Assembly: GCA_009103225.1 (NCBI GenBank)
Contig: RHPI01002402.1
Location: 525,099 to 589,098, forward strand
Source of the DNA: Chlorokybus atmophyticus
Taxonomy: Eukaryota > Plantae > Mesostigma and Chlorokybus algae
Direction of reading: 5' to 3'
Length of the DNA: 64,000 nucleotides
How positions within the stretch are numbered: position 1 is the first letter of the stretch; each line of letters starts with the position of its first letter. Positions 41,024-64,000 of the stretch are shown in pieces. The notes below the pieces were generated by a model. That model was not told the origin of the DNA. It saw nothing but the letters and a program-made list of their open reading frames with translations, and searched no databases. Made by a program: the position numbers and the translations under genes.

Positions 41024-42963
41024 GGCATGTCGCACGATCCGGAGGGACAACTCGTTAACGAAAATGTTGTTCGTGAAATGCGCTATTTTTGCAATCTGGC
41101 AACAATTGCTGCCATCATATTGTCAAACCTTTGCCATATATGCAGGCAAGCTATTGTCAAAACTTTGCCAACCACTCTATGTTATTGGTATACATTGCAA
41201 CGTTACAACACACATGGTGCATTCATTATGATGTAAATACTTTGCCAACTACTCTATGTTATACGCATGATTCACCACGTTACATCGCACATGGTGCATT
41301 TACTCCGTTGTTAAGTCTGTGTCAACAGCAAGCCTTTGTTGTTTGTGACATGCATGCTTTAATAGTTATCTAGTACATGTATACGCCATTGGTGTATGCA
41401 TAATAACAGGTTGTGCTTGTTGGCAAACATTTGCCAACAAGCACAACCTGTTATTATGCATACACATATTTTCAATGTCTGAAATCTCTGATGGAAGTGT
41501 TGTGCTAATCCTATATGCACATATTTCCCTTGAACTACTGTACAATTGACGAGACTCGCAAGTGTGCTATGCGAAAATGACACCACTCAACGTGTTAGGC
41601 TAATTTTGCCAACTACTTAGCGCGCAATCAGACGCTCCCGCTCACTACGCGCGCATGCTGCATGTTGTGCGAATCATACATGCACATATTTCTCTTGAAC
41701 CACTGTACAATACAGACGGGACTCGTAAGTGTGCTGTCTGAAAATGACACCACTTGACGTGTTATGCAAATTTTGCCAACTACCCAACGCGCAATAAGAC
41801 GCTCCCGCCCATTACGCGCGCATGCATGTAAAAAGCTAGTAATTTACGCCCATCAAATATACGGATGGGATGGAGTTTGGATGCACGACCTACGGCTTGA
41901 TGTGTCGTGGACTCAGCGACTCGATCAAGTCAAATAACACACATCTTTAACTGTACTACATTATATTATATCAATACTTTTTTTGGGGGGGGGGCTGTAG
42001 CTCTCGCTTGATCGAAGTTTTTGCGGCCGTAAACCCCCAAAACAGAAAAGAAAAAGTTACGCCAAGCGCTATGCGCTGGGGAGTCTAGCGGGGGACTTGA
42101 ACGGGGTATAATTAGTCTATTATGTTAACTGTCTGCGGCAGTGGTTTTGATAATAGATTACTTAAATAATTGAAAGTTTGCTGCAATTTGGCGTCTTAGC
42201 GGTCTAATGCGCAGCTTGTGAATCCGATATGTTGTAAGTGCAAGCCTGCATTGCTCGCGGGTGGACAAGGCCAAAGTTTTGCTTCGATGCGCGCATATGT
42301 TGCGCAGTGGGCTGAAGCGGTGTACTGCACGCCGAGCTTGCCATTGGTAAAATTTGTCCAACACGACGAGTAACAATAGGAAGCGGATGTGCAATCTCTG
42401 CAGAATGCGCGATAACATTGTATTGACTGCATGGGATTAATCGCAATCTCATACCACAGATACGATAGCTATTGACACGCATCATATCTGATCAGATTTC
42501 GAGATGCTACATGCAAGTTTAAACAGCTGCTTGAAGTCGCGTGACAAGATGAGCTTGCAAGTAATGTTGAAAATGTCAAATTAATCAATGATTGAATGCT
42601 TGACACAAGCATCCCTTGCAAAATGCAAACACGAGCATCAAGCAAAATGTATGACAACATTGTATGATGCAGATGGCAAACCTTTGCCTTACTTTAATGC
42701 ATATCAAGTAAAAAAACCAAACAATGATAGAACGCAATATAGGTTGGTAAATGTTTACCAATACCTGTATGTGTTGATTGGATAATGAACACATTGTATC
42801 AGAAGTTGGTTCTTTCCAATTTTGTGTAAATTAATTATAATCCCATCTAGATGATGTTGTAGTTTGAAAACTTCCTTATGCATCTGTTTGCAAGTTTGTT
42901 TTATTTCATGATTTTTTAATCAACTCCGTCTACGAGTTGTCCCCCTGGATCGCGCAACACGCC
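41024..42963. repeat. Degenerate inverted-repeat (foldback-like) structure with internal tandem duplications
   Basis: ggcatgtcgcacgatccggagggacaactcgttaacg (41024-41060) resembles the reverse complement of 42927-42963. Tandem copies at 41512-41657 and 41677-41824, a weaker inverted copy at ~42290-42360, and ~78-bp copies at 41161-41300. A T-tract/G-tract lies at the centre (~41977-41996). Confidence 0.5.
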
Positions 42964-44019
42964 GTTAGCTTCATTTGCAGTGCTACCAAAGGCTTGAGCG
43001 CGGCGTATGTGCACATGGCGTTTGGTGGGCGCGATGTGGATTTTGTGCGTGCGTGAGCGTGTTGGGTAAATATGCCAATGTACATATGTATATAGTGAGC
43101 TGTCATGTGTGCATAATTGACTACGCACAACTCTTGTGGTGTAATAGGTGTGATAGTGGTACGTACCACTCAGTGATAACCCATTAAGTAGCATGCATGT
43201 CGCACAACAAGTTGTCTTGTATGTCCCTTCGCATTGCACCTCACACTCTAAGGCTGAGATAGGCTATGATGCGCTATGATAGGCTGTTGTTATAATAGTA
43301 TCATGTCTTATTGTATCTTGCGCAAGACTGGTACTAGTAGTACGCGATCTTGTCCACGTGGTAGCATGACATCATGTACATGCATGCCATTTTGATTCAC
43401 ATGCGTATACATTATGAGATTGTATGTTGTATAGAAGTAGCACGGTAGTGTCCATGCAAACGTGTATGTAGCAGCCCACAATGCCATTAATGTCGCCTGA
43501 CAACAAACAGCTACACACATTCCAACACCCTCAGCTCTTCAACCCGACGCCAGCTCAATACTGTCATAGCCTACTTGTTTGGCTTAAGGCAGGTGCATAG
43601 CACACAACCATGTACATGTGTATATGGTTTAGGAACGGGGCCACCAGCAGAACACAACACAAAACATCTGCGTTGCATCAAGTAGCAACACACAACAACC
43701 AAAGCAAAGCCAGCTAAGCACAACTACGGGGGGCTGGACCTATGTGCTTGCTATGCGCGTATGATGGCAAGCAAAGATGGAACGTAGTTGCAGCAGCAGT
43801 GGCTCAGCTACTTACAGTGGCACATCACGAGATGCATATACAGAGTGTGCTATGATGAACATGTAAGTACAAGCGATTGCAGGTTGCTATAACAATGTCA
43901 TACGAAACAATGATTGTTGTATTGCATGCGTGATTGGTAACAGCAACATTAAGGGGAATACAACACTACAATCATATATGTGTACATGTCTTACAAGATT
44001 GTGATACGTGCAGGGCTCA

Positions 44020-44450
44020 TGCAGAGTCCTACCACAATTTTTACCTGCATCCAAGAACTGGTGCGTTGTAGGATATGCATCAATGCTTTAATAATCATCA
44101 TTCGACATAATGTCCAATCATGAAGATCATCAATGCTCATGTCGTTTACTATGCAAGCCAGCGACTCTATCAATGTGTATCTTGGTTTGTCACATTAGCC
44201 ACATTTTGCACATCACCTAAATGTCTTGCTAACAACCTCACAGTGCTCATAGAAGCAGTGCGTGGCGTTAGCCATAAAACTAGTCGCAAAACCCTCGCTA
44301 ATGCTGCTTGCTTGCGCAATCTCCTCCGGTCTGAATTTGTGCACTACTTGCTCCAACTTAGGTAAGTTGGCATGCGCAATCCGAATTTCTCATGAAAATT
44401 TTCTTAACTTGGTTGCACTGTGACATCTTAAAATATTGGTCCAAAAGCTA
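44020..44450 (-). pseudogene. Relic ORF with stops explainable by C-to-T deamination
   Basis: About 130 codons in one frame: SATKLRKFS*EIRIAHANLPKLEQVVHKFRPEEIAQASSISEGFATSFMANATHCFYEHCEVVSKTFR*CAKCG*CDKPRYTLIESLACIVNDMSIDDLHDWTLCRMM... The stops (TGA, TGA, TAA) could derive from CGA/CAA. Confidence 0.4.
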
Positions 44451-44855
44451 CCATGTCACTTCGGAATCTTTAAAGAAAAGTCATTCGCGCACAAAAGAAT
44501 ACGAAATGAAATGTTATTGAAATTTTAGTGCATTTTGGTTTAAAAGCTCAAAGGTGCTTACCGCACCTTGATTATAACAAACCAGCTGCCACACATGTGC
44601 ATAAATGTGGTACAAAATGCGGTGCACCTCATATACATAACGTATGATCATGCAAGTTGTATCTTGAGTGTTTCATACAAAATATGACTTGTATGAAACA
44701 CCCAATTGGACTTTATTGCTTCGCACTTTTGTCATGACAGTGTCCATGGTCGATACCTATGCAGCCATATGTAACAAATATGGACAAATGTGTTTATGCA
44801 AGGCTTTTGTGATGGATTTCTTAATGCTTAATGTATACCATCATTATTACCACCA

Positions 44856-45545
44856 TTCGGCTGATATATATATATTGACGGCCGCTCAAACGAAATCAGT
44901 TACGATAAAAATAAATCCTCTCATTATTGCCGTTATTGCTGAGGCTCAATAAATCATTATGTGCTGCACTTTGCTTGTGGTGCATTGTGCATACATCATG
45001 CTCGATGGCATATTGATATATTACTTCGGCTGATGTATAGCCCGACGGCCAAACGAAATCGGTTATGATAACAGAAGATCTCGTGTGGGGGGTGTTAGGT
45101 GCCGACCAACCTCGTACCAATGGAATTCGTTCGCCGTTGCTGCCAACAATAAAAGATTCATCGGGCTTTTTATGGCGCTGTCGGCAACTGTACTTTTAAC
45201 AACGCGACCGCTTGGTTTATGTGCCATTGCAATTAACGCACGCACCGCGGCATAACGACGGTGCCACTTTTTGCGAATGGTATTAACCAATAGACCGATT
45301 TCAACGCCGTTCTATTTTATTGCCGTACTCACGTGATACGGTCAAGGTTAGGTGCGTTTTTAGCAAAAATGCTTGCAATAATTACGTCAGGCACTTGAAG
45401 TCGGCTGATGTATTGCACGCCGTTCAAATGAAATCGGTAAAAATAACAATATGTTGCTAACGAGTAGAGTGCGATTGCTGTTCGTAGGATGGTTTGAAGA
45501 ATTCTTTGAGGTATGGGGTCGTCCAACCTCGTACCAGTGAAAACA
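44856..45545. repeat. Diverged repeats directly left of the large transposon
   Basis: tcggctgat.tat...caaa(c/t)gaaatc(a/g)gt at 44856, 45025 and 45401; ccaacctcgtacca.tg.aa at 45106 and 45523. Confidence 0.8.
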
Positions 45546-45654
45546 CGGTTCCCTTGGCAAACTGTCGAGCTGCGCCAAACACGCGCGCAACATCAACTCT
45601 GCCGTTTCCCGTTCGCCGTCGCCGGGGCGGTGAAAATGCTTTTGGGCTCCTATA

Positions 45655-46220
45655 CACACGGAATTTTTTCCACGGACCAGCCCTGGTCCGCACGTACGGA
45701 GCAGGGCCAAAACGCCCGGGCGGCTTGGGGTCCGGACCAGGGTCGCCCGCCTTGGTCTGCACGCGGGGACCAGGGCTGGTCCAAACAGTACGTAATTGTC
45801 CTACGGTCCCCCAAAAAACCGGGCCAGCCCTGGTTGCTGTTATCATGACGAGCGCAATGGGACCAATGCTGGTCTGCCATGCGTGTTGCTGCATGCACCA
45901 AGGATGGTCCGCTCTTGGCACAGTTCTGTCAAAAGCATCACCACTACTGGTCCCGAGTAGCAGGACCATCCTTGGTTCGCATTGTGGGACCATGCATGGT
46001 CTACTTGTATCTTAATGTCTAGCCCAGATGGTCTGCAAGGATGGTCCCGACTAGTGGGACCAACCATGGCTCTGCTGGCGGGACCATGCCTGGTCCACAC
46101 CCAACCATTTCTTTGTACCAGCCGAATCTCACTGCATTGGTCCATGCTTGCATCCAGGGACCAGCATTGGTGCACGACACCCGCTGACATCCTGCACCAA
46201 TGCTGGTCTATGACCCATGC
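45655..46220. repeat. Putative left TIR and subterminal array of GGACCA/TGGTCC motifs
   Basis: At least 16 exact GGACCA or TGGTCC hexamers plus variants, many arranged as inverted pairs GGACCA-N4/5-TGGTCC, within ~550 bp. Confidence 0.8.
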
Positions 46221-46636
46221 ACCAGCAATTCACGGTAACCCATTCTATTATACAGTGCGTGTCTGGCAATCAGCGAGACCTGCAAAGTGTCAAACATCTA
46301 TGCTAACTACAGCAGTGTTCTCATAGCTACTAAGATCACCAGCGCTCATAGCCTGCCTATGATGAGACTGAGCGCATGCTGCGCACACCACGTGATCTCG
46401 GCACTGCACGCACACGTTCCTTCTGTTCCATACTCTGCTCCATACTTGCAAATGTAGACGGCCTTTCAGATGAACGAGTGCACGCCGCTTGCACCAACAA
46501 CAGATTGTCGTAGACACTGCGCACACTGCATATGAGCAACACCGCAACTGTAGAACACAATGTACATTTCTTAAAGAATAGACACGTAACAGTAGCAACA
46601 TGCAACAGTTGCAACTTTGCACATCTCTGATACCTA

Positions 46637-49183
46637 TCATCTGGAGGATGCCGTTCTGCTTGGCTCCCATCGCCCCATGAAGCGGAACCTCTTGGGCTCA
46701 GGCGTTTCATTTTCATCCGGCATGCCTGCATGCACAATGAGTGGCGAATGTGTACAATCACATACACAGAGACCAGACTGCTCGTACATGGCACTATTAG
46801 CTTACAGCTTACCAGCTTACGAGCATACCCTATAGACTGCATTGTGACACTGTGCATTGGTCACAGCTACCAAGCCTATGAGCGGTCTATAAGCTCAAAA
46901 CATACCTGGCCGTTTCCTCGTGTTTATCCAGCCCAGCTGACCACCCTGCGTTGGGTCTTCGCCCAGCCACTTCTTCTTCATTGCAAACTGCACAACCGCT
47001 TGCATGATACGCTGTGTTGGAATGCTGTCCACCCGGGCCTGGTCTCGAAAGGGAAGAGGTGCCACGCTCTCCATCAGCGCCACCTGCTTCTTCCGCCAGA
47101 ATTCCCATTGCCGGCCAACCTGCGCCCTAGTAGGTGTTTGCTCAGTGCCACAGCACACAGCCGCCAGCATCTCCAGCTTCTCATCATCCACTGAAACCTC
47201 GTGGTCCTGCATGGGCACATCATCAGCACAACCAGAAAGCACTTGAAACAAGAAATTGCGCGCACATAGCTGACAAACCTGATCATCTTGCTGCGCATTG
47301 GTGTTCAGTTCTTCAAGTACTCTCACCTGGCATTCCCCCATCCGGACGTGCCTATTGAAGCTGCATTCACCGTTTTCACAGACGCAGGTGCCCATCTGGC
47401 TCATGAACATAAGTGGCCACTCAACCATCACGCTGCACTCCATCAGTTGTCAGTGTCATAGGCGGTTCACATATGCACACTTTAGCCAACTACACGCGAC
47501 GCACGTCTCGCACTTGATGACATGCAGTGACAAAAGCATAGAATGTGCGTGATTGACAATCACCAACTTACCTCTAGCTCGGCGCGTGTGTAATGATCCG
47601 GTGTCTTGCCATGCATGAGCCTTTGCGACCTGATAGGTATGAACGGCCGCACGCTGTCGTCCTCCACGCAAAACACTGGCAGCCAATTAATGATCTGCAC
47701 GCTGTATGTGCGGCAGGGCTCATCCACCTCGGCAATCTCAAGGATGGTGGCAATGGCCACGGGCACACATGGGTCTTCACGACTTGAGGATTGCATATCG
47801 ATGTGAAAGACTTTGTCTCGGTCGTAATCGTCTGCATGTCTGCACCTCATGAACATGCATCGTGTTAGATAACACAACACAACAGCTGTACATTCAGCTT
47901 GCTTCACCTCTAGTGGAGTTGTCACAGTTCATGGTTGCAATCATACATGCGCGCACACAGTCCTTACCTGAATTTGAGCCAAGTAGCCCGCAGCACGTCA
48001 TCTGGAAGGGGCCCGTCGCTCAAGGGGCACCACAGAATGACTGTCTGCGAAGGGCTGTAATCGTCAGGGCTGAAAACTCTGCCCCACCCTACAGACCGGC
48101 GACGAGCAGCTGTGCCGTGTTTGGCAGTTCGCTCTGCTTCTCGAGCATGCGCACGGAGCTGGACCCGCTGCTCCCTGGACTGTCCTTGGCGTTCACCTCG
48201 TTCTTCTTTAACGCCCCTCCGATAAGTCCATTAGCGTTGTATGAAATATGCCCGGATGTGCTCTGCCAAGCAAAAGTTATAAGGATGTCCACATGTCCAA
48301 AAAGCTGCTTTGGTCTCATAAGGTGGCACCGTCCAAGACACTCTACGACTTATGCATTTCCATAGCTGAGACCTAAAGACTCATAGGAACTGTCCAGTGT
48401 CTGCTTATGCAATCCATTGCTTCTAGATGCTCATAGGCACTGTTGTCAGCGTCTACGACGTATGCGTTCCATTGCTGAGACCTAAGGACTCATAGGCACT
48501 GTCCAGTGTCTACGACTTATGCCATCCATTGCTGAGACCTAAGGACTCATAGGCACTGTCCAGTGTTCCAGCTTGACAAACAGTAACCGACCAACAGTGG
48601 CACCACTAACCAGTAGTAAAAACAGCTGGATATACATGAAGACTAGCTGAATTCAGCTGAACAGCAAGCCATCAAGTAACGCGACAACTTGGCAAGTAGC
48701 GTGATATCAACTGACTTGCAACAGTGGCAACACTGACCAGCAGCAACAACAGCTTGAGGGCTAGCAAAGCTTGCTATATGCATGAATACGGGCTAGTTTC
48801 ACCTGAACAGTTACCGATCTACACACAAGGCATTCAGAGCAAACCTTCACAGAAAACAACTGACCTCTGGACATGCGGAGCTCTATGCCTTCCCCAAACA
48901 CTAGAGGCTCCAGCTCCGGCTCTAACTCCTCACAGATTCTCTCCAGCTTGGCAATGCTGGCCTGCGCTGCATGATCCTTGCTCCGCTTGTCGAAATTCAC
49001 CTCCTTCCAACCTGGACCAGGGATTTGCTCCCACTGTTTGAGCTTGTTGGTGAACTTGTTCATGTTTCGCACATGGGTGGGGTGCACAGAGGAAAAGTTG
49101 TCCCTCAGGAACCTGTCCCCAGTTTTCTGGCCGTTGTTGCCACAGTTGAACACTTGGCTGGCAGAAGGCACTGCGGTCACCAT
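46637..49183 (-). pseudogene. Transposon accessory gene A (orphan, possibly TnpA-like), with premature TAA
   Basis: Exons 48865-49183, ~48093-48263, ~47965-48040, ~47574-47808, further exons at ~47330-47390 and ~46905-47245, and 46637-46725. The first four are phase-consistent only in the frame MSREHIRAYFIQR*WTYRRG (TAA at 48231-48233). Confidence 0.6.
48312..48567 (-). repeat. Intronic ~57-bp tandem repeat, cluster 1 (inverted relative to clusters 2-4)
   Basis: 4-5 units of gctgagacctaaggactcataggcactgtccagtgtctacgacttatg...catt. Confidence 0.92.
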
Positions 49184-49410
49184 TGTTACACTATGCACAA
49201 AGCACCTAAGCTTCCAGGTGACAAAAGGCTCACACAGCAGTCTATAGCACGAGAGTCTACAGCACGCGACTTATTGCAGCTGCGATAACCAGTGCCGAAG
49301 TCATACTGCGCACAATGCACAACACATGCGCACAACGCACGCGCGAGCGAACAAAACTTCCAAATGACGGAACCTGACAACAAACACTTCCAAATGAATC
49401 AACTTCCAGT

Positions 49411-49497
49411 GCCTGTGACCTAGGGTTCGTCGGAGCGGCCTATGCGGTCGCCTGTGACCTAGGATTCGTCGGAGCGGCCTATGTGGTCGCCTGTCAC
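49411..49497. promoter_or_regulatory. 39-bp tandem repeat (2.2 copies) in the divergent promoter gap between gene A and gene B
   Basis: gcctgtgacctagg(g/a)ttcgtcggagcggcctatg(c/t)ggtc twice, between the ATG at 49183 (-) and the ATG at 49640 (+). The regulatory role is inferred from position only. Confidence 0.45.
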
Positions 49498-49639
49498 GCC
49501 GCCGGCAGCCTGATGTTTGGTGTGCCGAAGGTAGTTCTGGCGGTGCTGGCAGAGGTGTGGTAGCGGAGTGCTGGCTTGTGTTGCACAAGAGTGTTATCCA
49601 GTGCAAGTTGTTGCAGAGATCAGCAAGCTGAGAAACACT

Positions 49640-52600
49640 ATGGATGATGACATCCCTACCGTGTCGGCGGCATTGTCGACTTCAGAGGAGACTCGGAGGC
49701 AGCCTTCACACCAGCGGACTTTCTATTGGCACTGTCCCTACTGCAGAACAAATGTGAAGGCGGGCCATTTAAAGTCCAACGGGCTTCCAGAAACCACACA
49801 CACCAAGATTGCAAAGATCGCGCAGCACCTGCACATCAGATATTGCAGGTACATGCGCAGACGAACCAACCAGGGCGGCAGGGAGACAGCAGATGAGCTG
49901 AAGGGACGGATGGGGGATTCTCTCTCCAAAGCAGTACGGGTGCGTGTGATGTTGTGAAAGTGCGTTTGTTCTTATAGACTTGTAGACTCATAGACGTTGT
50001 ATGCATGCTAGTGAACTGATATCTGGGCAAAAGACTATGCAACAAAATTGACTTACGTGAAGCATATGTTGGCGTGCAGGCCCTGAATCATCCCAAACAA
50101 AGCAGAGTTTCCATCGACAACATGCGGAGAGTCACCGAGGAGTATCTGCGAAAGCATCACACTGGAGCCTTTGCATTTGTAAGCACATGCAGCATGCAAC
50201 TGTTAGCGAAAAAAATGCCATTACAACGCCTTGGTTGCTAACCTTGTCGCTTGTTACACAGAACAAAAAATTCTGGGATGACGCTGAGCACGATTACAAC
50301 AACATCCCCCTCTACCCGAAGGAGCAAACCACACCAAAGTGGACAAAGCGGCCGCGGCAGCGAGGTTCAGGTGTTGCCGCTGCAGGTGTAGCGGCAGAAG
50401 CGTCAACAGCGGAGGAAACCGAGTTCGACTTCGCTGCGACAGAGACGAGGGAGCCAGAGGAGCTTGAGGAACAACTTGAGGATGTGATGCAGGAGGGGTC
50501 GGAGGAGTCAGCGCAGAAGGCTACGGAGGAGGTGTTGGAATTGGAGCAGTCTGAGGAGGAAGAGGTGGTGCCACCTGCAAAGAAACCGAGGCATGCCAGC
50601 TGGCGAGGCATGAAAATAGGAACGTCATCGGCAGCCGGCTCTTCCAAAACTCCCCAAACACCTGTGAGTATCCATGCGAATACTCATAGACTGCTCTGAT
50701 CAGGACATGTGCGCGTTGTCTTATGTCATAGGCCGAGACAGTCTGTGAGTCAATAAATGTATATGATATCCTTACCATTGTCTTACACACAGGGTGGCAG
50801 GGTGAACCAACCTGTAGCCGATGCCCCACAGGCTACTAAGCCAAGGCAGCACCGATCAGCGCAGGCCCGTGAACTGGCTGTGACCAATGCTGCAGCCGAG
50901 CTCAATCGATTCACCAAGACGGGGATGGACGCTGTGGAGTTGCCACCGCCATCAGAAGAACATCTGCGGGTGCGTCTTTGTTCGCATAATATCATGCATG
51001 CTGATCACATGCCATGGGCGCCATGCTGCATGCACTGCTCAGTTGCAGCCTATGACAATTCACACCAACTTACCGTCACTTGTTGTTTGCAGAGTGACAG
51101 AGAGCTTCCCAACCGCAAGCGCATACATAGAGCGACCGGTGACCCATGGCAGCTGTGGACGAATGGTCCAATTCCCATAGGCGAACTCTTCCATTTTGCT
51201 GGCAAAGAGTTCGTCATCAAGCCTTCCAATATCCCTGGCGCAGGGCTCGGCTTGTTCACCTGCCAGCCTATTAAGAAGGGTGACCGCATCATGGTCTTTA
51301 ACGGCAAGTGGTACACCTACCGGGAGATGCAGAAGACATTCCCTCAGAAGGAGCACCTGCACCACCAGCGATACCACCTGCACGTCATCAGGGACGTGCC
51401 ACGCCGCCAGAGCCCTGTCATCGATGGCCACCCTCGATATGGGAACATAGCTGGCTTCCTCAACTCCAGCCGCGATACGCAGTACAAACCCAACTGCCAC
51501 ATCATGGACTCCGTTGATGAGGCTGCGGTGCAGGCAGCTGAGGTTAGGAGTCAGAGTGACATCGCCGCCGGGGAAGAGCTGCTCATGGAATACGATCCCT
51601 TCCCTCCACCTCCAGACGAGCAACCTACAGACCATGTGAGTATATGCAGCCTGTGGCTCATGCCTATAGACATCACTTGCTCTGCCAGACACTGTCTCCT
51701 GCTGTTATAGACTGCATCTGTGAGAGCTGTGCGGTCTATGACCTTGTCATTCAGCATTGCAAACAATGTGCTGATCACCGTCTTACCTCAGGTCATGGAG
51801 TACTTTTTCGAGGCGGCCAGAGAAAAGTTTATCAAGGAGGCAACAGAGATGGCAGCTCGCCATGGCGTCGCGCTCGAAGACGGCGCGTACCTCGCCGCTT
51901 GCACTGCACCACGTCAAGCTGGTGAATCTTTAGGCGCCTACACATGGAGGGTGCTGAAACGACCACAAGTTGCCCGAAATCAAAGACAGAATGTAAGTGT
52001 TGAGAACGCTTCATCAGTGCATGGTCGTACATGTCATTGTGCATTCATAGACTGCACTTGTGTCACCAGAACGACACAGTCAATCACACTGTCAGAGAGG
52101 CGTCTGTACGCCTGTTAAAAGGGATATTTGACTCAGCTGAAAGCAAGTGCGCTGAGCTTACACGCGTGCTAGATAGACTATTCCTGCTGTTAAGACAGAT
52201 AGACTCCAGAATAGAACAAGAGAAAGAACAGAGGGTATGTTTGTGTTATTAAACGTAAATGAGTTGTGTGTAATTCGTGTTCTAACTGGTGGTTATGATT
52301 CGCAGAAACTTACCAAGGAAGTGTTCCGTAAGGCAGAGACTACAATTCGCAAAGGCCTTCAAGAGATTGCCGCTCAGGGCGCCATGGTGACACGGGCTGC
52401 AAATCAGCACAGGCTGAAGGAGCAGGATTATCAGTCAAGAATCGAGAAGACCATTTTGTCCATGGTGCGCAATGGTCTGAATGAAAGCCGGCGACATTGG
52501 TTGACTGAGGAGCAGATAGCTGCCGTGCGCACCAATGTTCAAAACGCCCAAGATACGACTGCACAGTGGCAGGCTGAGCAAAAGCAATTGCAGCAACGCA

Positions 52601-55600
52601 ACAAGGCGGAGTGGGAGACACGCCGGCTACGCATCGACGCCATTGCTAATCGGAGGAAACAGAAGCGAGAAGTTTGGCTGGAAGAGCAGATGAAGACCAT
52701 CCATTTTCAGGATCTAGGATGGGCTGAGAATTACAAGTCCTTGCGCGCATACCTCATCAACAAGTGGGAGTGCAACCATCCTTGGCCATCCATTCCTGCT
52801 GCAGCTCCTGGTCCGACTCCTTCTAGTGCTGCTTCTGGTGCTGCGGCTACCTCTAGCAATCCTTCTCAAGCTGCTGTTGATGCTGCTCTTGCCTCTGCTG
52901 CTGCTGCTGCTGCTGCACTTGCAGCATTGGGAGGGGTTTCGGGGCGACCTTCAGTTCCTCTAGTGTTTCCGGACAGGCCACCACAAGGAAGCGCAGAGAA
53001 GGATGCCATAGACCGTGGCCATCAAACTGCTGGAGGGACTCCAGGAGGTGCTGCTGAGGGTCAGCATGTCAGCGGTAATGAACCTGCTGGAGGTGATGAA
53101 CCTGCTGGAGGTCGTGATGAACCTGCTGGAGGTGATCATCATGAACCTGCTGGAGGTGATCATCATGGAGACGGCAGTGGTGATGAACCCAGCGATCATG
53201 AAAGCAGCGATGATGACAGAAACGGTGACGGTGACGACGATGCTCGTAAGAAGTTGGAAGACGGTATCGCTGCTGCACGTTCAGGAGTCGCCAATGCCAG
53301 CAACATAGCCAAGTTGGTTGAAGGCTTTGTCCAGAACCTCCAACAGCAAGTGCCCCAACTTCAGGTAACCCTTGGCCAAAGTCAGCATTAGTCAGTCTAT
53401 GGCTACTTGTGCGTCACAGGCCGCACTGTCCATTTCGGTCTATGACCCCGCTGTTTCGTGTTTGTGCTCTAACTTGGTGTTTCGATGCAGCAACACCTAG
53501 AAGAGGCGTCTACAAGCACCCAGGCCGTTGCATCCGCCAGCGCTGATGTCAAGCGCATCCATGCAGCGGAGTTATCAGCCGCTGTTGAAGCAGCAGCCAA
53601 GGCTAGCCAACAGCATGCAGAGTTGCTGCAACAGGAGAAGAAGGCCAGAGAGGAGGCCGGGGGGCGCATACAGAAGTTGGAGGTGGCTCTTGCAAAGCAG
53701 GAGAAGGAAAGAGAGGAGGCCGTGGGGCGCATACCACAGCTGCAGGCCGCTCTCGATGCAGCCAATGCTGAGCGACAAAGGCTGCAACAGCAGGATCAGG
53801 CCAGAGCGGAAGACAGCCAGCGCGTACAACAGCTACAACAAACTTTGCAAGAGCTGGGAGAAATCAATGCTCGGCGTTCAGAGCTGGCGAGGGAAGAAGC
53901 TGAACGTCTGTGCGGTGAACGCCTTGAAAGAGCACCTCACCCGCTGCAAGCGCATTGAAGATGACGTCAAGGCCGCCTTTAACAGGATCAGCGAGTTGGA
54001 TGAAGAGTTGGTGCTGGCCTTGCAGCGTGAGGATGCAGCGCAAGAGTTGGTTGCCACCACTGCTGACAGGGACCGCCTACGACAGCAGTTGGCGACAGCC
54101 GAGGAGGCCAGGAAAAAGCAGCGAAACCTTCTTGACCAGCTTCAGCAGCAGCCCTCCGCGCAAGCACAAAAGCTCCAAGCAGAGGTTGACGCCCTTAATG
54201 CAAGACTTCAGCGTCAGCAGTCACACCAAGACTCCATTCGGAAGCAGCAGGAAGACACGCTTCAGCACCAGTTGAGGTGGACCAATGCGGAGAGGCAACG
54301 CTTGGAAACAGAGAATGTGAGCCTACGGCAGGCGAGGAGCAGCTTCAAAGGATCAGCAGCAGCACGCTTGGAGGAGATCCAGAGCCTGCAGGAGCGCCTG
54401 CGCAAAGCCGAGGAGGCCTCCCAACAAGCGCGTGACGCTGCGCGCAAAGCCGAGGAGGCCTCTCAACTCCAAATCCAGCTTCAGCAAGTGGCCTCCCTCC
54501 AGCGGCAGGCGGGTGAGGAGGCGGACCGCCTACAAAAGGAAAATGCAGAACTGAGTAAGCGCCTGCGCCAAGCTGAGGAGGTCAGGAAGAAGCAGCAGGA
54601 GAGCGGCGGCCAGCAGCAGCAGGAGGCGTCCACTCAGCAGAAGGCGCTTGAGGAGGCGGACCGTCTACGACAGGACAATGCAAGCCTGACTGAGCGGCTG
54701 CGCCAAAGCGAGGAGGCCAGGAAGAAGCTGGAGAAGAGCAGCGGCCAGCAGCAGCAGCAGCAGGAGTCCTCCGCTCAGCAGGTGCGTAAAGAGGCGGACC
54801 GCCTACGAGAGGAGAACTTGCAACTGAGTGAGCGCCTGCGCCAAGCCGAGGAGGTCAGGAAGAAGCTGCAGGCGAGCAGCCTACGGCAGGACAATGAGAG
54901 CCTGCGCGAGCGCCTGCGCACAGGCGAGGAGGCCAGGAGGAAGCTCCGTGCAGCAGTGCAGTCTCGCAATGAAAAACTCCGGAAGGCCTCTCAGCAGGCG
55001 CAAGAGGCTGGGCGCAAGCTGCAAACAGAGGTTGAATCTTTGACTGCTGAGAAGAACCGCCTCGAAGCAAGAGTGGAGTCTCTCAACAAACAACTCCAGC
55101 GGCTGGCCTCTCAAACGCAAGAGACTGGGGGCAAGCTGCAAGCAGAGGCAAGCAGGCAAGCAGACGCCCTGAATGCGGAGGTGAAACGCCTGCGTCAGGA
55201 AAATGCCAAACTCCAGAAGTCCAATAAGAAGCTTATCAAAGACGGCAAGCGACCAGCCACCATGGACGACCCGGAAATCCTGAAGGCTCAGGCGGACCTG
55301 GCAGAATCGCAAGAAAACGTTGCTCGAGCCATGCAGCGTGTCAGTCATACAGAGAAGCTGCTCGAAGATACCCAGCAAAGCTCGAGGAAACGCTTCAGAT
55401 GCTGCAGACTGTAATGCCAGGTGGTGGAGATGCTGACATTCCTTCCACGTCCGCACTACCGCCAGAAGCTGAACTGCAAGAGAAAATCATTGAACAGCAA
55501 AGGGAGAACAATCAACTTGATAGGCGGGTCACGAACTTAGAAGATGACCTGGAGCTCGTTGAAAAACAGCAAATTCGCATGGAAGGCGTGCTGGTTGATG

Positions 55601-56133
55601 AGTGGATGCGGGTTGTGGTGGAGGACTTCCTGGCTGAAAGTCCCGGCACGCGGGCACGTTCGCTGAGCGAAGGAGGAGCACAGACTACCCAGCGCATACA
55701 ACAGTACTTGCAAGGTTGGCAACAGCTGATGGCTCCAGAGCTTGCGGTCTGCATACAAGCTCGCAATGCCTGAGCGCAGAGGAACAATCAAGCGACACGA
55801 GACACTTGGGACAGTGATCCTGCTGCACTGTGTGTTTTGATCCGAAACACAGCGCACCATTACCTCTGTGACATCAATCAACGGCGAGCGGAGAATGGGC
55901 TCCCTTTGTACGCCAACACTTTGGAGGCGTTTAGTGCTCTGCAGCCGGGCCTCACTCACTTTTTGCTTCTGCTTGATCAGAACATGGCAAACAGATCATA
56001 TACACACCTCACTGCGGCACAACGGGAAGTTATGCACCTGGGCCCACACTACACCAAAGCCATTTATCATAACCTGATCGGCTACTACTTGAGCAGACAC
56101 TCACCACCACCACCGCCACCACCACCACCCTAG
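49640..56133 (+). CDS. Transposon gene B: zinc finger + acidic region + SET domain + long coiled coil (~1,700 aa), two frameshifts
   Basis: Ten exons (49640-49932, 50080-50178, 50262-50664, 50792-50968, 51093-51635, 51792-51992, 52069-52234, 52307-53364, 53491-55712, 55852-56133; boundaries approximate to a few nt). WHCPYC...HLHIRYC; SET motifs SNIPGAGLGLF, IKKGDRI, GNIAGFLNSS, DIAAGEELLMEY. Frameshifts at ~53891 and ~55377. Confidence 0.85.
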
Positions 56134-56431
56134 TATGGCCTATAGACTGAGTCAGTAGCACCCAGGTACCTACTTCAGGTTGCTTATAGTCCAGCTGCAG
56201 GCTGGGTTTATAGGCATCCATTCAGTGTACATAGCCTGCAGAACAGATGTGCATAAGTGTATACAGTAATATATTGCCATCACACATGCAGTCGCATGCA
56301 CACGCGCACAGTGCACATAGTTGTCTGCAAGGCGCAGTTATCCGAACTGGTCTATGATGCAGACACACGCACTTCACAAACACGTGAATGCAAGTGCAAA
56401 CACACTCACTTGCTGCCTGCTGTCCTGGCTT

Positions 56432-59400
56432 TCAATACATGCAATGTTGGTTGAATTTCATTCGCCGTCCATCACTTCTACTTTCCTCAGTCCAAGCGCA
56501 GCTGCTTCTGCTGCTCCCTTGCCTTGGCCAGTCGAGCTTTGTTTTGGCTGAGAAAGGGTCCTCCACCTGGTCGCTCGCAGCTGTGTTAACCACCCAGACG
56601 CCTAGCCTCCTCCCCTCTGCCTTCTTCAGGTAGTCGACTACCATATGACCGTCGGACCGCACCTCTTTGACCACAACAACCCAAGGGGGTGGGTCAGCAG
56701 GATCTTCATCTGCGGGCTCATGCGGAAGTCCGAAGTCGAAAATGAACTTGCTGTTGTGCCGCATCTCCAGGACATCGCCCTTTTCTGGCCACACCGGCAA
56801 GGGGATGTCGGCTGCAGTGACTCTCAACTCTGTGCTGTCATAGTCGTACGCCAATTGATGATTTGCTACATCACGGTTGAGCAACACCCAGAGCTTGCGT
56901 TGCAACTGGTCTCCACCGATGAGCGTAAACTCATCTGCCAAACGCCCAATGCACTGTGCACCAGTGTCTCTGTCAATCAGGTCATTGCCCATGGCATCAC
57001 GCTTCTTGGTATAAGGCCGCACTTGCACATGGATAGTGGATTTCCGCCAATTGAACAGGTAGATCTCATCCACCCGGCATGGTGCGACAGTTGGGTCCGC
57101 CATCTTCACGTTATCAACGCCTCTGCGTCTGCAATACCAAAGGCTTTACTCACTCACTTTGTATCAAGAGATGACAGTAGACTTTCGGGCAGAGCAATAG
57201 AATGCGTAATTGGTAGACACTGGACAGTGCCTATAAGACTTTCGGTCAGAGCAATAGATTACATAATTCGTAGACACTGGACAATGCCTATGAGACTTTA
57301 GGTCAGAGCAATAGATTGCAAAATTCGTAGACACTGGACAGTGCCCATGAGACTTTAAGTCAGAGCAATAGATTGCAAAATTCGTAGACTATACCACACC
57401 TGTAAATGACCCCGTTACGCAGATATGCGCGGAACTTGCGTATGCCTCCGGGCAAGTTGCCAGTGATGTCCTCAACGCGCTTGATTTCCAAGGCCAAGGG
57501 TCCCTGAAGAGGGACAGGCTTCCTGGTGCTGCCAATAAGGATGCCCTTTTCTCTAATCAGTCGCGCATGCTCCAAGTCTGGGAATTTCTCAGCGAGGGTC
57601 CAGAGCTCCATGGCGTGCTTTTGAGTGCGCACTTCGTAATGACAGTCACTACATGCTCCACTCAGAGGCTGGTAAACCTGCTGAGAGTGCGCCATTATAT
57701 CATTAGCTCGGTGGCACAACAGCTTTCCAGTCCTCTGATCTTCTCGCATGACGTTGAGCATCCTCAGAAACCATCTCCTTAGTGTACGCCGCATGTAGCT
57801 GATCTCAAACTGCTTCCCATTGGTGAAGGTGTTGACATAGTTGGACACAGTGCGCTCTTGCACAAAACACCAGTACACATCATGACTCCCGTGCCAGATG
57901 ATGTCCTCCAGAATGTGACCGGCACCGGCCATATGCTCGTTGGGCCTTTTGTTGGTGCCAAACAGGTCCTCCGAGTAGACCCTCCAATATTTCAAAAGAG
58001 CATTAGCAAGTTCCAATAGCTCCGCAGTCCAGCCATGTAGGCGAGAGTTGTGGAAGATGATGCGGATGAGCAAGTGAAGCGCAAAGCTGACATCTTTGGT
58101 TGCTTCGTCTACCAGATCGGACACAGCGTATGGCACAGCATACTGCACGAACATCTGCAAGTCCTGGGCCTTGAACCAAGCCAGGTGCTTGCTGATGCCT
58201 CTTGGGAAACGTTTGCTCTTCAAGTCCATGGGGCGTGATATGCGCATCTGGGACAGCCTGCGCTCCACCTTGGCAATGTCTTCGACATGCTTTAAACTAT
58301 CTGCACCCAGCGTACTGTGCACGAAACTTTTGCAAAGCCCCTCCAGCAACAGGTGCATCGTGTCATAGACCAAGTCACGGCAAGGGTTAAACTCATACAT
58401 ATGCCACAGCCGCCAGAGTGGAGATTTCCCTGTGATGCCGCACTCCATTGATTTTTCTTTCCGGTTTTGGCCATCGAGTGAGTCCACCATGCACGCGTTG
58501 TCGAACGCATCCTTTGCTGCTCTCTCTGCTGGGGGATGGCGGCAGTAGTAGCGATTGTCACCATAAAAATGGTATGTACGTGTCCTCGTAGTATCTTCAC
58601 CCTGCTCAGCACGCCGGGGCACTTGGTGCTGAGTGGCTTTGAGGAGACAACGCCGGCAGAGGACGAGGCCTCCATTCTTAAACTGGCCTATCTTACATTG
58701 CGCTGGCTGGTCACCCGTCCATGCCCACAGCACTACCCGCAGTGTTATCTCTTGACCTGCAATGAAGTCAACATCAGTATCTCACAACCAGTCTGATAGA
58801 GACTGTGATAGGCCGCACTGGGCAGTGCAGCCTATGACAGTCTCATAGACCGCAAGAAGGCAGATATGCTATAACCAAGTCGCAGCCACTGAACAGTGCC
58901 TATGAGACTTTGGCATACACAAAAATGGACTGCATAAGTTGTAGACTCTGAACAGTGCCTATGAGACTTTGGGTGATATAGGTGACAAAACATTTTATAA
59001 CCCAGTCATTACCTGGTCGTCGATCAAGCACGCGGCTGTCGACATGATTGGAATCGAGGCCATAACGAACAGTGAAGCCGTTCAAGTAGAGGTTCTCCAG
59101 GTCACGCACCAGTGGTTCCAGAAAGGGCTCCAGACTGTCCACACCGTTTGGGAGCTGATCAGTGGGAACAAAGAGCAAAGGCATGACGGAAGACTCTTGT
59201 GAGGAAATGCGCTTCCCGCCATTGAGCACAGAGGAACTGACAACGGTGCAGCTGTGCTTCACAGTGGTTGTTGAGCTGAAGCCGTCGGCGTGGATTAGCA
59301 GGGCTATGTTGCGAGGGTCGCCAAGAGCTTGCTGTACCATCTGATGGTTGGTTTTGTGGCACCCTGAGCATTTAAATGTCACGTGATCGCTTGCGTTGTG

Positions 59401-60584
59401 ATGCTCTAGATCGACATCCGGGATGTGGTGGCAGAATGCGCAGGACACAGGCAGCTTGATTTTGTGGCGAGGGTCCCGGAAGCTGCAGTGATGCTGCTTC
59501 TTCGCACCATGCCAATACTCAGTGTTTGCAGCAGGTACTTGTTCCACAGGGACGTGCAACCACTCATCTTTGTGGCGCCATTCCTCCAGATAGTCGTGAG
59601 CGATTGAAGGGACAGCTAACTTGGCGCTGAGCCAGGCACCTATGCGATTGTACAAGAAGTCGCAACATTCTTTGCGAACCCTGCCGCATCCCCCTCCGCA
59701 CGGTGTGTTGCGAAGGTGATCAATCATTTTTTGCTTGGTCTCGCTCGTGTCCGAGTCTTCGTCATCTTCATTGAGTGTGGGATAAGGTGCATCAAACAAG
59801 TACTTGCATGTGGGACAGACGGTCAGGCGCTGAGGAACAGGCATGCCGAGTGCGGCCAACAGTTTATCCACGGCGGCAATGTCTGTCGACAGCTCATCCG
59901 CGACAGGGCTGTGCGATATTGTGTCGCCTATGAGGCTGGCGATGTCATCCCGCAACTGCTCCTGTTTAAAAGGAACCTCCAAGGCCAGCTTGACCACAGA
60001 ATTTATCTAGCCAAAGATGAGCTTCATAATCTCGTTGACGAGAGCCCCTTGGCCACCAGAACCTTCCAGGGCTGTCACAATCTTTAGGTAGATATCCAGC
60101 CACTTCTTCGTAGCAGACTCCGATGGTGGTTGGCTGGGCTCGAGAGGTTGACTATGGGGAATAGGTGGTGCCCACCTGCTTGCGGCAACTGTCAGGTCAA
60201 GTGCACGGTGCGCCCTTGCAACTGCTTCGTCCACCATCTATGATGACAGAACTTGGTTAGCACGCCAGCGATCAACACCAATCCACATCACCACGCTATC
60301 AAGAATCACAAGCAAGACACACGCGTGCATGGCTGTGTCATAGACCAGACTGGCACTGTCCAGTGCCTATGAGTCTTTAGGTCTCAGCAAAGGAATACAT
60401 AAGTCGTAGACACTGGACAGTGCCTATGAGACTTTAGGTCAGAGCAATGGAGTGCATGACTCGTAGACACTGGACTATGAGACTTTCGGTCAGAGCAATA
60501 GATAACTGCATTGATAACTCATAGACCGCACTGCTTACCATGCCGCGGCATCCACTGGAACTGTAGTTGCAGATAACTTGACGA

Positions 60585-60617
<33 letters not shown>

Positions 60618-60769
60618 CTCTCCACATGATCAGATGACTCGTCGGCGAATGAGCCACCTCCAGCTTCAACAGCCGGTGACAGAGGGGAATGCGAAGTGGA
60701 TGGCTGGCAAGCGGTTGCAGGGGGGTGAGCAGCAGGCTGAGTTGCTGAAGCTGGCCTGCAGGGAATCAT
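56432..60769 (-). CDS. CACTA/EnSpm (Transposase_21/Plavaka-like) DDE transposase, premature TAG at 60007-60009
   Basis: Exons 60539-60769, ~59032-60237, ~57398-58762 and 56432-~57130. Motifs EYWHG, GDPRNIALLIHADGF, LEPFLEPLVRDLENLY, LRVVLWAWTGDQPAQCK, LCRRC, YDTMHLLLEG, KAQDLQMF and EHMAGAGHILEDIIWHG...YWCFVQER. Confidence 0.92.
57178..57390 (+). repeat. Intronic 57-bp tandem repeat, cluster 2 (~3.6 units)
   Basis: tagacactggacagtgcctatgagactttaggtcagagcaatagattgcaaaattcg at 57214, 57271 and 57328 plus partial copies, in the last transposase intron. Confidence 0.95.
58887..58972 (+). repeat. Intronic repeat, cluster 3 (2 units)
   Basis: ctgaacagtgcctatgagactttgg twice, ~59-bp period, in the middle transposase intron. 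Confidence 0.88.
60352..60503 (+). repeat. Intronic repeat, cluster 4 (3 units)
   Basis: cactg(t/g)(c/a)cagtgcctatgag(t/a)ctttaggtc...gcaa three times, in the first transposase intron. Confidence 0.92.
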
Positions 60770-61227
60770 ATTAGGCGCTTAACAACTGCTGTCAAGAAAT
60801 CTGTGCTGGCTCACCGGTAATTTTGAGACCCCCCGAGTCCTGATTATTCACGCCATCTCGTCTGAATATTGATGACTTGATCCGTTTCACGCCTTTTGTC
60901 CGTGAATATCCAATGGTTATTGTACTTTCTGTCCCATCCCTGCCAAAAGGAACAGCGTTCTTCACCCGCAAGACGCATTCATATTCAACGTACATACCAC
61001 TGAACCTCGTTTCAACCCGTACACTTTGCATTTCAAACTGAGTATTTCGTGCATATTCAATGTCAGTCAAGTTGTAGTTGATGAACGATATGGTACAATG
61101 AATTGTCAGTGCCCAAACAGCAGAATAATCACCCAGCGTGTGTGGTGCTGGCTACGACTTGCCGCGAAAACCCTGAGTCCTAAATACCATTGCATAGTCA
61201 CCGTCATATTCAGGGAACATCTAGCAT

Positions 61228-61384
61228 GAAATACACCAAGTCCCAAGTGCCATCGAACATTCAACACCACTTGACAAAACTGCCGATGTGAAATTACACC
61301 AAGTGCCAAGTGCCATTGAAAGTTCAACACCACTTGGCAAAACTGCCGCTGTGAAATTACACTAAGTCCCAAGTGCCATTGAAA
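61228..61384. repeat. ~63-bp tandem repeat (2.5 units) between the Ulp1 gene and the transposase
   Basis: gaaattacaccaagtcccaagtgccattgaa.gttcaacaccacttg.caaaactgccg.tgt. Confidence 0.9.
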
Positions 61385-61515
61385 AGGCAAGCATGCTAAT
61401 GGCATGCATTCTAAATTCTATTAAGCACAAAGTTAGCTTGGGCTACTATTACACAGCTGGCCAATGAACCTGTGCTTTTGACTACAATTTAGCTATGTAC
61501 CAACCGCCTGCTACT

Positions 61516-63520
61516 TCACATCCGCCGTGACGTTTGCTGTGCTGGCATGCTGTCCATGAGTGTTCGCAGTCGTCTCCTTAAGCTGTCTGCCTCTTTTGGA
61601 CGAAACCAATCCTTTTGCATCTGCGTTGCACACACCCACACCATCTGGTTGCTCAACACATGTCAACCTACACGACTTTGCACTAAGGCAGCTGCCATAT
61701 GGAGTACATTCCAATGCATGAGCTGTACCTGCTGAAATATCGGGGCGTTTTGCTCAATTGGACCAGCTTGTATCCCATCTATAAACTTGTCAAGGTAAAC
61801 CATGACAAACAGCCCGCACGCAACTCCATCCCTCTGCTGAGGGACCTGCACGAACACGCTATGTCAATGCGGGCGAACCAAACGTATGTGCATCTACATA
61901 GGGATTGTGCCGGGAGAGGGCGTGACCTCATCACCAGGCCAAAACAACATGTCCTCCCTGTGGATCAAGTAGCGGGACGTTTGCGGGAGAGAAGCGCTGT
62001 TGCGACTCACTTCCATGCTTCCTGCCCCACATATAGTTTAGATAAGCGCGCATTGGTCCGTCGACGTTGCGATGTAGACCAAGGGAGTCGAGATGGACGA
62101 TCAAGGGCGGCGTGTTGCTTCCAAGTTCCCCTCCAGGATTGCACACCAGCAGCAGACTCCAGTGAGTCCTGTGGCATGCAGACTTCAAAGTGAGTCCATG
62201 CGAGCAAGTACAGCAGCACTGCAGTGCGAGAACTTGGCTTCACTCTCACCGGCTGTCTGGGTTGACAATTGCTGCCAGCAAGTTCTTGGAAAACGGATCG
62301 TTCTCCCACCTATCTATCCTGTGATTGCCACTGTGCCAGTTATGTTGTTCATGGCAGTGCACAATCTTGGTGTAGAAGTGCGGGTTGAACAGCCTCACGT
62401 GAATGCCTTCAGCTCTGCCCACGACCTCCTCTTCCTTATATCTGCGCGTGCGTGACACATACATGACACAGCTGCACAACACCAACAACGCAAGGCTCAT
62501 ACCTGCAAAAGAAGTGGAGCACGGTGTCGTTGAGCTCCTGTCTGCCGTCCAGCAACTTTCTGTCCGCTTCAAACACTGGCACCGCATCACGTGCATTTGC
62601 ACTAGGGTAAATGAACAGGGGCACAGGTGTTGACGCCTCAACTTCAGCACCCGGCCCGTCCAGCACCATGATGTCATCATCGCTGTCCACGAGGTCCACA
62701 ACTGCTGCAGCCGTCGTGGTTCCCTGACTTGGGTGCTGGCGACGTTCTCCGTTGGCATCCTCATCATCAAGTTCCATCGGGACTGGCTCTGCAGCGTAAA
62801 AAGGTAGGATTATGCAATAAGCGCCGCAACGCAAACCAAGAAGCGCCAGCACGTTGCTGCTTACCACTCATATCCTCATCCCCGCACTCTTGAACAAAGC
62901 TTCTACCCACGCTCTCAGTCGGTGGTTGTGAAACCCTACCGCTGCTGCCCGGCAGAGAACGACGCGCGAGGCTGTCCCTTGGAAGCTGTGCCGGAGCCCC
63001 ACCTTCTTCGTACGCAGCGCATTGCGAGCATGTGACCGCAAAGATGTTACCAACAGCATGACGTTGACAGAGGCTGTTTGGGCATGTCGCGCATACTTGT
63101 CGAGCTGGTTCATTGCATCTGTGCACATGGCACCTGCGTTCCAGTGATCATTTTAGAACTTGTCGACTTCAGACACCATGCATTCACTGGATACTGAAGC
63201 TTACTTGTGCCTTGGGCATTCCCAATGGTCATCTTCCACAGGTGGTACAGTGACGCAGCGTGCGTGGTAGCTCTTCCAGCAGCCTTCTGCATCACAGCCG
63301 AATATGCTACCGCCATCCTTGCAGACAAAGCAATAGTCTTCGTGTTCACGATTCTCCAATGCATCCAGCTCTAGCCCCGGTCTCATCCTGCAAACCAAGG
63401 TCAGGTGCCCAGATCTGCAGTCACACAACAGTAGGTATATGCAGCATCACAATAGCAAAGAGTACCTCATGTACTCAAAATGCCAGTCACGGCGTGTGGT
63501 CCACGACACCTCGCTCGCTC
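61516..63520 (-). CDS. Transposon gene C: PHD-C5HCH reader + SIM-like motifs + Ulp1/SENP (peptidase C48) SUMO protease; 5' end uncertain
   Basis: HEDYCFVCKDGGSIFGCDAEGCWKSYHARC...WECPRHK|CHRCNEPARQVCATCPNSLCQRH; VVDLVDSDDDIMVLD; LFIYP...LNDTVLHFF; FNPHFYTKI; HWSLLLV (His); HLDSL (Asp); VPQQRDGVACGLFV (Gln/Cys); final exon MQKDWFRPKEADSLRRRLRTL*. Confidence 0.88.
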
Positions 63521-63636
63521 GCACCTTGCTTGCTTGGTTTGTTTGCTTACCTGAACATCTGTGCGTGTGCCGGTGTGTGTGTGTGTGTGCATGTGTGTGT
63601 GGGTGGTTGGGTTGGGCTTGTGTTGTTACTTCTCGT

Positions 63637-63828
63637 GGTTGGGGCAAAACGCTGGGGCAGCCTCGTGCGTAAGGCCTCGGTGACCTTGCCCCTGCGCCCA
63701 TGCACAAGTTGGTTTGGGGAAAACGCTGGGGCAGCCTCGTGCGTAAGGCCTCGGTGACCTTCCCTGCGCCAATGCACAAGTTGGTTGGGGGAAAACGCTG
63801 GGGCAGCCTCGTGCGTAAGGCCTCGGTG
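63637..63828. repeat. 72-74-bp tandem repeat (3 units) upstream of the PHD exons
   Basis: aaaacgctggggcagcctcgtgcgtaaggcctcggtg at 63646, 63720 and 63792. Confidence 0.93.
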
Positions 63829-64000
63829 TCCAGGTTGCATGCTTGCATTATGCGTGTGGTTTCCAGTTTCAGTAGTTTTGCGGTGGTCACCTGCGCTTGG
63901 GTGCGATTGCTTGGATGGTTTACTTGCTTGCCTTCACATATGTGCGTGTGCTGGTGTCTGTGTGTGTGTGTGGTGGTTGGGGGGGGGGGGGGGGGGGGGG

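Follow-up and report, generated by a model that had tools for sequence, protein, structure and literature searches.

Two related transposons are probably nested in one block

We analyzed a 64-kb stretch of contig RHPI01002402.1 from the green alga Chlorokybus atmophyticus (the whole stretch is called the window, and positions are counted from its first letter) and focused on the block at 45655-64000, which holds spliced eukaryotic genes. This block is probably a nest of two related DNA transposons of the CACTA/EnSpm-Plavaka type, with one element, B, inserted into a decayed, SET-carrying element, A. According to our model, element A would span 45655-60811 and resume past the B insertion, and would contain a CAC terminus, a palindrome array, several orphan open reading frames (ORFs), a gene encoding a SET domain followed by a coiled coil, and the transposase gene. 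Element B would start at 60812 and reach past 63.5 kb, would have its own CAC terminus and the exons of a PHD_NSD-C5HCH-SIM-like-Ulp1 protein (SIM, SUMO-interacting motif), and would exist in multiple copies. The original prediction had united the SET gene, an NSD-type histone reader and a deSUMOylase in a single element. A contig boundary at 60811|60812 separates the first from the other two, and writer, reader and deSUMOylase most likely came to stand side by side when one element jumped into the other.

The boundary was seen in two public sequencing runs, called X1 and X2 here, whose contigs we aligned to window positions 57651-63650. X1, although classed as an RNA run, was treated as DNA because its contigs cover introns and intergenic DNA without splice joints. 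X1 and X2 contain about 75% of the 31-mers sampled from the SET region, as would a copy about 99% identical to that of the window.

60811..60812, no strand: A/B junction; contigs of X1 and X2 part from the window here on either side, into flank sequences absent from it

The contigs of X1 and X2 both break exactly at 60811|60812. Those matching 60625-60811 run into non-window sequence starting with GTGTCGCAATGAGG (no less than 149 nt in X1, and 918 nt or more in X2), and those matching 60812-61220 are preceded by three different sequences. These loose-end flanks were found nowhere in the window, and no junction-bridging contig is among those listed for the two runs. Position 60812 begins with CACCGGTAATTTT, which is similar to the left end of element A (CACACGGAATTTTTT), the two having a CAC-CGG-AATTTT core in common. 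Because the break is exact, 60812 starts with CAC and three alternative flanks precede it, the simplest reading is that a separate element, present in multiple copies, has its end at 60812 and extends to the right of it. Divergence from the contigs is about 1.7% on the left of the junction (25 differences in 1504 nt in one stretch) and about 0.3% on the right (5 in 1733 nt in one stretch), an indication that A and B have had separate histories.

In this arrangement the PHD-Ulp1 exons lie upstream of the A transposase on the minus strand, and B would have landed 42 bp upstream of the transposase ATG (60769), breaking the promoter region of A. If true, nesting predicts what should be found to the right of position 64000: the reverse complement of CACCGGTAATTTT, a repeat of the triplet GCT, then GTGTCGCAATGAGGCTTGAAAGC, and finally the reverse complement of CACACGGAATTTTTTCC followed by ATA.

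Terminal sequences and repeat arrays

Both elements have an end within the window, and the repeats associated with them are as follows.

45655..45671, plus strand: left terminus of element A, CACACGGAATTTTTTCC; single occurrence in the window, preceded by ATA
45674..46173, no strand: subterminal array of element A, eight GGACCA-N4-TGGTCC palindromes and extra half-sites, against 0.04 expected by chance
48338..48566, plus strand: 57-bp tandem array with the CACTGTCCAGTG palindrome, among the orphan ORFs; its orientation is opposite to that of the three arrays within the transposase gene
57162..60475, minus strand: three intronic 57-bp arrays, one in each of the three transposase introns
60812..60850, plus strand: terminus of element B, CACCGGTAATTTTGAGACC; three alternative preceding flanks in X1 and X2
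61227..61385, no strand: 63-bp tandem repeat, 2.5 copies, in the subterminal region of B; contig depth raised about 2-3 fold

The CAC-initiated end with a subterminal array that had been proposed at 45655 was confirmed. The GGACCA and TGGTCC half-sites form no second cluster anywhere in the window, and the array is strongly self-complementary (fold z = -6.2). Judged from its sequence, this looks like a genuine CACTA-type terminus, and the palindromes are presumed to be candidate binding sites for the transposase. The triplets flanking the two termini are ATA at the A end and GCT at the B end. Near the second terminus, one X1 contig matches only the first 39 bp of B and diverges after 60850; a second family, or a non-autonomous derivative, may share the B terminal sequence 60812-60850.

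The 57-bp repeats, characterized by a CACTG-N2-CAGTG palindrome, are confined within the window to four places, 48338-48566, 57162-57389, 58859-58974 and 60354-60475; the contig depth peaks at 60251-60450, over one of the intronic arrays. It had been proposed that this family ties the whole block together as one unit of more than 18 kb. The arrays do lie on both sides of the SET gene, but they are confined to 48.3-60.5 kb, so the unit that they mark covers that span only, without the PHD-Ulp1 exons. We also considered that the arrays might be oriented with transcription, and dropped this idea since the 48.3-kb array is opposite in orientation amid minus-strand ORFs.

An alternative that bears on the left boundary is that the 45655 end and its palindromes belong to a third element, or to a solo end, the true left boundary of A lying between 46.2 and 48.3 kb. 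Nothing in the window ties 45655-46173 to the genes, as the first shared repeat is met at 48338, and the DNA to the left (38-45.6 kb) is itself rich in repeats. However, there is no other terminus-like feature or break in composition between 46.2 and 48.3 kb, and the 45655 terminus resembles that of B and occupies the same relative place, on the 3' side of minus-strand genes. We regard a third element or a solo end as unlikely, and take 45655 as the left end of element A in what follows.

The SET gene is a likely cargo of element A

49364..56132, plus strand: long SET/coiled-coil gene, a chain of ORFs joinable by GT-AG introns; start and last exons uncertain
51144..51626, plus strand: SET domain with the motifs GAGLGLF, NIAGFLNSS and GEELLMEY; Pfam E = 9e-11, ORF intact

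The SET domain announced by the original prediction was confirmed. In addition to the Pfam match, a phmmer search of the Protein Data Bank (PDB) with the SET ORF returned EZH2 and ASH1L, and an AlphaFold (AF2) model built from 25 sequences reached a predicted local distance difference test score (pLDDT) of 87 and matched known SET domains in Foldseek (E = 4e-9; MLL1, SETD8, ASH1L, NSD1 and EZH2). Of the cofactor and catalytic motifs of SET enzymes, GxG, the conserved Asn, PN and the catalytic Tyr are present, and the His of NHS is replaced by Ser, as in the closest subfamily. The SET domain is followed by a coiled coil of about 900 aa, including 135-bp coding repeats. The script that we used for chaining exons favours length and over-extends, reading part of the coiled coil in the wrong frame; its sole use here was to show that introns of the GT-AG type could link the ORFs.

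Among 1.84 billion representative proteins, the homologues of the SET ORF (best E = 4e-9) matched within the SET domain only and none outside it. A search of a word-indexed set of 5.8 billion proteins, which evidently lacks the transposon proteins of this genome, gave no match. This lack of a close homologue argues against a conserved host gene. The closest SET subfamily has the same N-S-S/C motif as the window protein, together with an N-terminal PIPI motif. Three relatives, P0022, P0031 and P0034, are fused to a LINE-type endonuclease (LINE, long interspersed nuclear element), a Tf2-1 SH3 domain or a reverse transcriptase, and from these sequences the capture of SET domains by retroelements seems to be recurrent. 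A close relative with an N-S-C/S motif, P0018 (L003:8668-12855), lies on a 38.9-kb metagenome contig of the Joint Genome Institute (JGI). This contig is dense, intron-free and virus-like, and the neighbours of P0018 are a TnpB/Cas12f-like gene, a JmjC gene, an EsV_1_7_cys protein and DUF5901, which suggests that giant-virus-like elements also carry this SET lineage. Together, the retroelement fusions and the virus-like contig indicate that the lineage is often carried by mobile elements. A scan of IMG/VR for the N-S-S SET subfamily gave 26 pattern matches, 0 of them confirmed. Three close SET relatives lie on contigs shorter than 2 kb, on which the gene context is uninformative.

We consider it rather likely that the SET gene is cargo of element A, given that 57-bp arrays flank it on both sides, that it has no homologue outside the SET domain, that a second copy about 99% identical exists in X1 and X2, and that the two runs also contain transposase fragments. 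The competing explanation is a host gene that lies between transposon fragments and is no cargo at all. In favour of this, the mobility of the gene with the element is a deduction and its SET fold is an ordinary one. The first three of the observations just listed speak against it, as does the apparent damage to the ORFs of the SET/coiled-coil gene, and we hold a host gene to be improbable.

In the spacer between the SET gene and the divergent orphan ORFs there is a 39-bp tandem repeat (49411-49494; 2.2 copies, 95% matches), which may be part of a shared promoter region.

The transposase, the orphan ORFs and the state of the element A copy

56435..60769, minus strand: element A transposase gene, four exons at about 60769-60541, 60240-59014, 58756-57399 and 57130-56435; convergent with the SET gene
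60007..60009, minus strand: in-frame TAG in transposase exon 2; CAG in a related copy (A>G at 60009, at full depth in X1 and X2)
46898..49270, minus strand: three orphan stop-to-stop ORFs, protein-like, at 48764-49270, 47563-47928 and 46898-47449

The transposase gene would encode a protein of about 1170 aa, with GT-AG exon junctions that keep the frame. Its match to Pfam Transposase_21 (E = 4.7e-5, 23 bits) falls under the 28.6-bit gathering cut-off. When the largest exon was placed in a protein-language Atlas, the nearest clusters were Transposase_21/Plavaka, with a score of 0.97 and 198 of 256 features shared. Four distant homologues (about 32% identity) have the motifs TGDQPA, CRRC (C(2)C), DxMH and WCxxxER in common with the window protein, which we take to be the DFPA, CxxC, D-MH and PFER motifs of plant Tnp2 transposases. 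These matches lend moderate support to a Tnp2/TnpD-type (Transposase_21/Plavaka) transposase in element A, consistent with the CACTA-type enzyme first proposed. An AlphaFold model of a 473-aa transposase exon, based on four homologues, had a pLDDT of 43.7 and was left out of the fold search. The transposase fragments present in X1 and X2 are diverged, at about 90% identity.

Exon 2 of the transposase consists of two large ORFs split by a single TAG. As both runs have CAG at this position, the transposase copy in the window carries a nonsense mutation. The coiled-coil gene also contains an in-frame TGA at 55771-55773, and its plausible reading frame shifts near 53925 and again near 55385; the two shifts are opposite in sign, 1.46 kb apart, and each is located at a run of A. 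Because of the nonsense codon in the transposase, the frame changes and stop in the coiled coil, and the insertion of B near the transposase start, we consider the element A copy in the window to be most likely inactive.

An orphan gene had also been claimed for the block. The three protein-like ORFs are indeed there, but they amount to a set of ORFs without homologues: none has a Pfam, Atlas or homologue match (one of them was also searched in the word-indexed set, with no match), and the best Atlas score obtained with one ORF, 0.63, is meaningless. By their position only, they may represent a second, TnpA-like gene of the element.

The PHD-C5HCH-Ulp1 module of the probable element B

61663..63446, minus strand: exons for PHD_NSD, C5HCH, an acidic/VVDLV SIM-like stretch and Ulp1 (C48); intact, with GT-AG introns, 99.7% identical to X1/X2 contigs
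63450..64000, no strand: GT microsatellite, 72-bp tandem repeat and poly-G run, upstream of the PHD exon

The gene that had been assigned PHD-C5HCH and Ulp1 domains withstood the analysis. PHD_NSD scored 31 bits, above its cut-off of 23.9, and C5HCH scored 23.7-24.8 bits, just below its cut-off of 26.3. The two exons are adjacent, with a GT-AG intron between them, in what appears to be the layout of NSD-type readers. Further along the gene, two exons match Peptidase_C48 with scores of 17.8 and 16.1 bits, both under the cut-off of 20.7, and the stretches of the profile that they match (95-131 and 160-190) are collinear; the catalytic order of Ulp1, His, Asp, Gln and Cys, is legible in successive exons as THW, LDS, PQQ and ACG. 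A phmmer search of the PDB with the His/Asp exon gave no match. No transposase of element B was found within the portion of it that lies in the window.

At window position 61705, near the C-terminal end of the Ulp1 frame, an X2 contig is one base shorter at full depth; the frame may thus end in a shifted tail in one copy or the other. Upstream of the PHD exon, 63560-64000 includes 2.6 copies of the 72-bp repeat (95% matches) and a poly-G run of 22 nt, and the X1/X2 copies diverge or rearrange around 63480-63525.

Weighing the nested arrangement

Several points weigh against the nested arrangement and the account of element A given above. Neither a right terminal inverted repeat (TIR) nor a target-site duplication is visible for A or B, both of which run off the window. 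A right TIR was sought throughout the window with the reverse-complemented left end (3 mismatches at most), with a 9-mer core and with sensitive BLASTN of both terminal regions, and none was found. We infer that the 45655 end and the SET and transposase genes belong to one element, the nearest 57-bp array being 2.2 kb away from that end. Contigs lose rare variants, so the lack of a bridging contig is weak evidence when taken alone. The contigs of X1 and X2 behave like DNA, with zero splice joints, and give no RNA support for the genes. The differences listed between the main transposase exons and the contigs are 12 synonymous and 17 nonsynonymous, indicating at most mild constraint on the transposase. 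The SET motif reads N-S-S where canonical enzymes have N-H-S, and the activity of the enzyme is a prediction only. Finally, as regards decay, the two frame changes at A-runs could be real indels or homopolymer errors of the assembly.

The original prediction, one giant CACTA element of more than 18 kb with the SET gene, the PHD-C5HCH-Ulp1 gene, the transposase and the orphan gene and with its right end beyond the window, can draw on the fact that all the genes lie to the right of one CAC terminus of which the window has no second copy; the core shared by the two termini would also allow a single family to be imagined. Against it, the contigs of the two runs split at the junction, where A runs on into other DNA and the sequence from 60812 follows three different flanks; that position itself starts a CAC terminus; the 57-bp arrays end at 60475; and the two sides diverge from the contigs to different extents. 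We consider a single giant element very improbable. An assembly misjoin of two repeats at 60811|60812 would fit the want of a listed bridging contig and a window that ends in simple repeats and poly-G and has an N gap elsewhere, but the break falls, to the exact base, on a CAC terminus that has other flanks in other copies, as a true insertion would, and de Bruijn contigs are expected to break at repeat borders anyway, so we give this explanation hardly any credence.

Neighbouring sequence

To the left of element A, the sequence at 38000-45650 has a G+C content of 0.43-0.46 and many tandem repeats of 53, 77 and 167 bp; element A sits in this repeat-rich tract, which adjoins a gene-dense region. 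The assembly gap comprises 213 N at window positions 6236-6448, with CT microsatellites on both sides. An Rfam scan of 45-64 kb gave no match.

Discussion

Intact copies of the two elements might work as follows. In intact copies of element A, the SET protein would be an accessory factor that alters the methylation of lysines, either at the element itself or beyond it. Marks like those on H3K4 or H3K36 would counteract silencing by the host, although the specificity of the enzyme is not readable from the fold matches. The coiled coil would multimerise or tether the SET protein, and the 57-bp arrays and the terminal palindromes would be candidate binding sites. SUMO is a modification widely used in repression. 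In element B, the PHD-C5HCH module together with Ulp1 would recognise histone tails and strip off SUMO, which would give the sister family an accessory function of its own. Putting these steps together, we can tentatively imagine intact A as a self-targeting system, in which an active SET methyltransferase, tethered through its coiled coil (alone or with the orphan protein) to the 57-bp arrays, places an anti-silencing mark on the element's own copies, B separately carrying a reader and deSUMOylase; we regard this full scheme as a long shot.

Transposons with chromatin-enzyme cargo illustrate the ways in which mobile DNA resists silencing by its host or turns it to advantage. If a CACTA family of a basal streptophyte has a SET/coiled-coil accessory gene, the theme would reach into the green lineage, in the form of a new protein architecture, and two sister families, one with SET cargo and the other with PHD-Ulp1 cargo, would be a tractable pair for testing cargo function.

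Among known systems, the maize En/Spm element provides the general plan: it has CAC(TA) termini, subterminal repeats bound by an element protein and a TnpD-type transposase, measures about 8 kb and has no chromatin-enzyme cargo. Element A resembles it in its CAC terminus, subterminal array and type of transposase, and its orphan ORFs are placed in a way reminiscent of TnpA.

Transposons with either kind of cargo have been described before, and what is new is the variant in a green alga; the novelty claimed for the combination was overstated, since SET cargo and CACTA-Ulp1 elements have both been published (PMC12730594; bioRxiv 10.1101/2025.02.11.637652; PMC2528002). Besides the red-algal Plavaka elements, DNA transposons with published SET genes include Helitrons as well as HarbingerS and MuDR (PMC12730594; bioRxiv 10.1101/2025.02.11.637652); in HarbingerS and in MuDR families of oomycetes the product is a SET histone methyltransferase (Kojima & Jurka 2014, cited in PMC12730594). 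HarbingerS and MuDR are like element A in being DNA transposons with an accessory gene for a SET lysine methyltransferase, which is read as counter-silencing. They differ in having a Harbinger or Mutator transposase, not a CACTA one, and no coiled-coil fusion is reported for them (PMC12730594).

For the module of element B, the counterpart is found in the CACTA elements with Ulp1 (CACTA-ULP, in grapevine and rice) that have been described as common in plants (PMC2528002); Kaonashi/VANDAL Mutator-like elements (MULEs) with Ulp1 have been reviewed as well (PMC13317346). CACTA-ULP elements are of the Tnp2 type and have an Ulp1/C48 domain, as B does (PMC2528002), the transposase of B being outside the window. 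B adds to this an NSD-type PHD-C5HCH module and a SIM-like acidic stretch before Ulp1.

The closest case to element A is that of the giant Plavaka (EnSpm/CACTA) elements of the red alga Bostrychia moritziana, which are cut-and-paste transposons of 17-19 kb with the accessory genes PAG1-3; PAG2 encodes a SET domain fused to a DNA methylase of the N6-adenine type, and PAG3 encodes ParB and a 2-oxoglutarate (2OG) oxygenase (bioRxiv 10.1101/2025.02.11.637652). Element A has in common with them the broad transposase clade, the SET accessory gene, tandem inverted-repeat arrays by the accessory gene and a proposed action on its own chromatin. In contrast, the SET domain here is followed by a long coiled coil, the host is a green and not a red alga, and the arrays are intronic 57-bp units. 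The ORFs of the block contain no methylase, ParB or 2OG domain, so the PAG cassette is absent from them, and the SET relatives lack PF01555.

In concept, element A is also akin to VANC of the VANDAL elements, an element-encoded protein that acts on short repeated motifs in the non-coding DNA of its own family (PMC13317346; PMC12730594). There is no sequence relation between the two, and the 57-bp arrays described here are candidate sites only. If the self-targeting scheme is true, element A would play, in a streptophyte alga of an early-diverging lineage, a part analogous at the level of histones to that of VANC.

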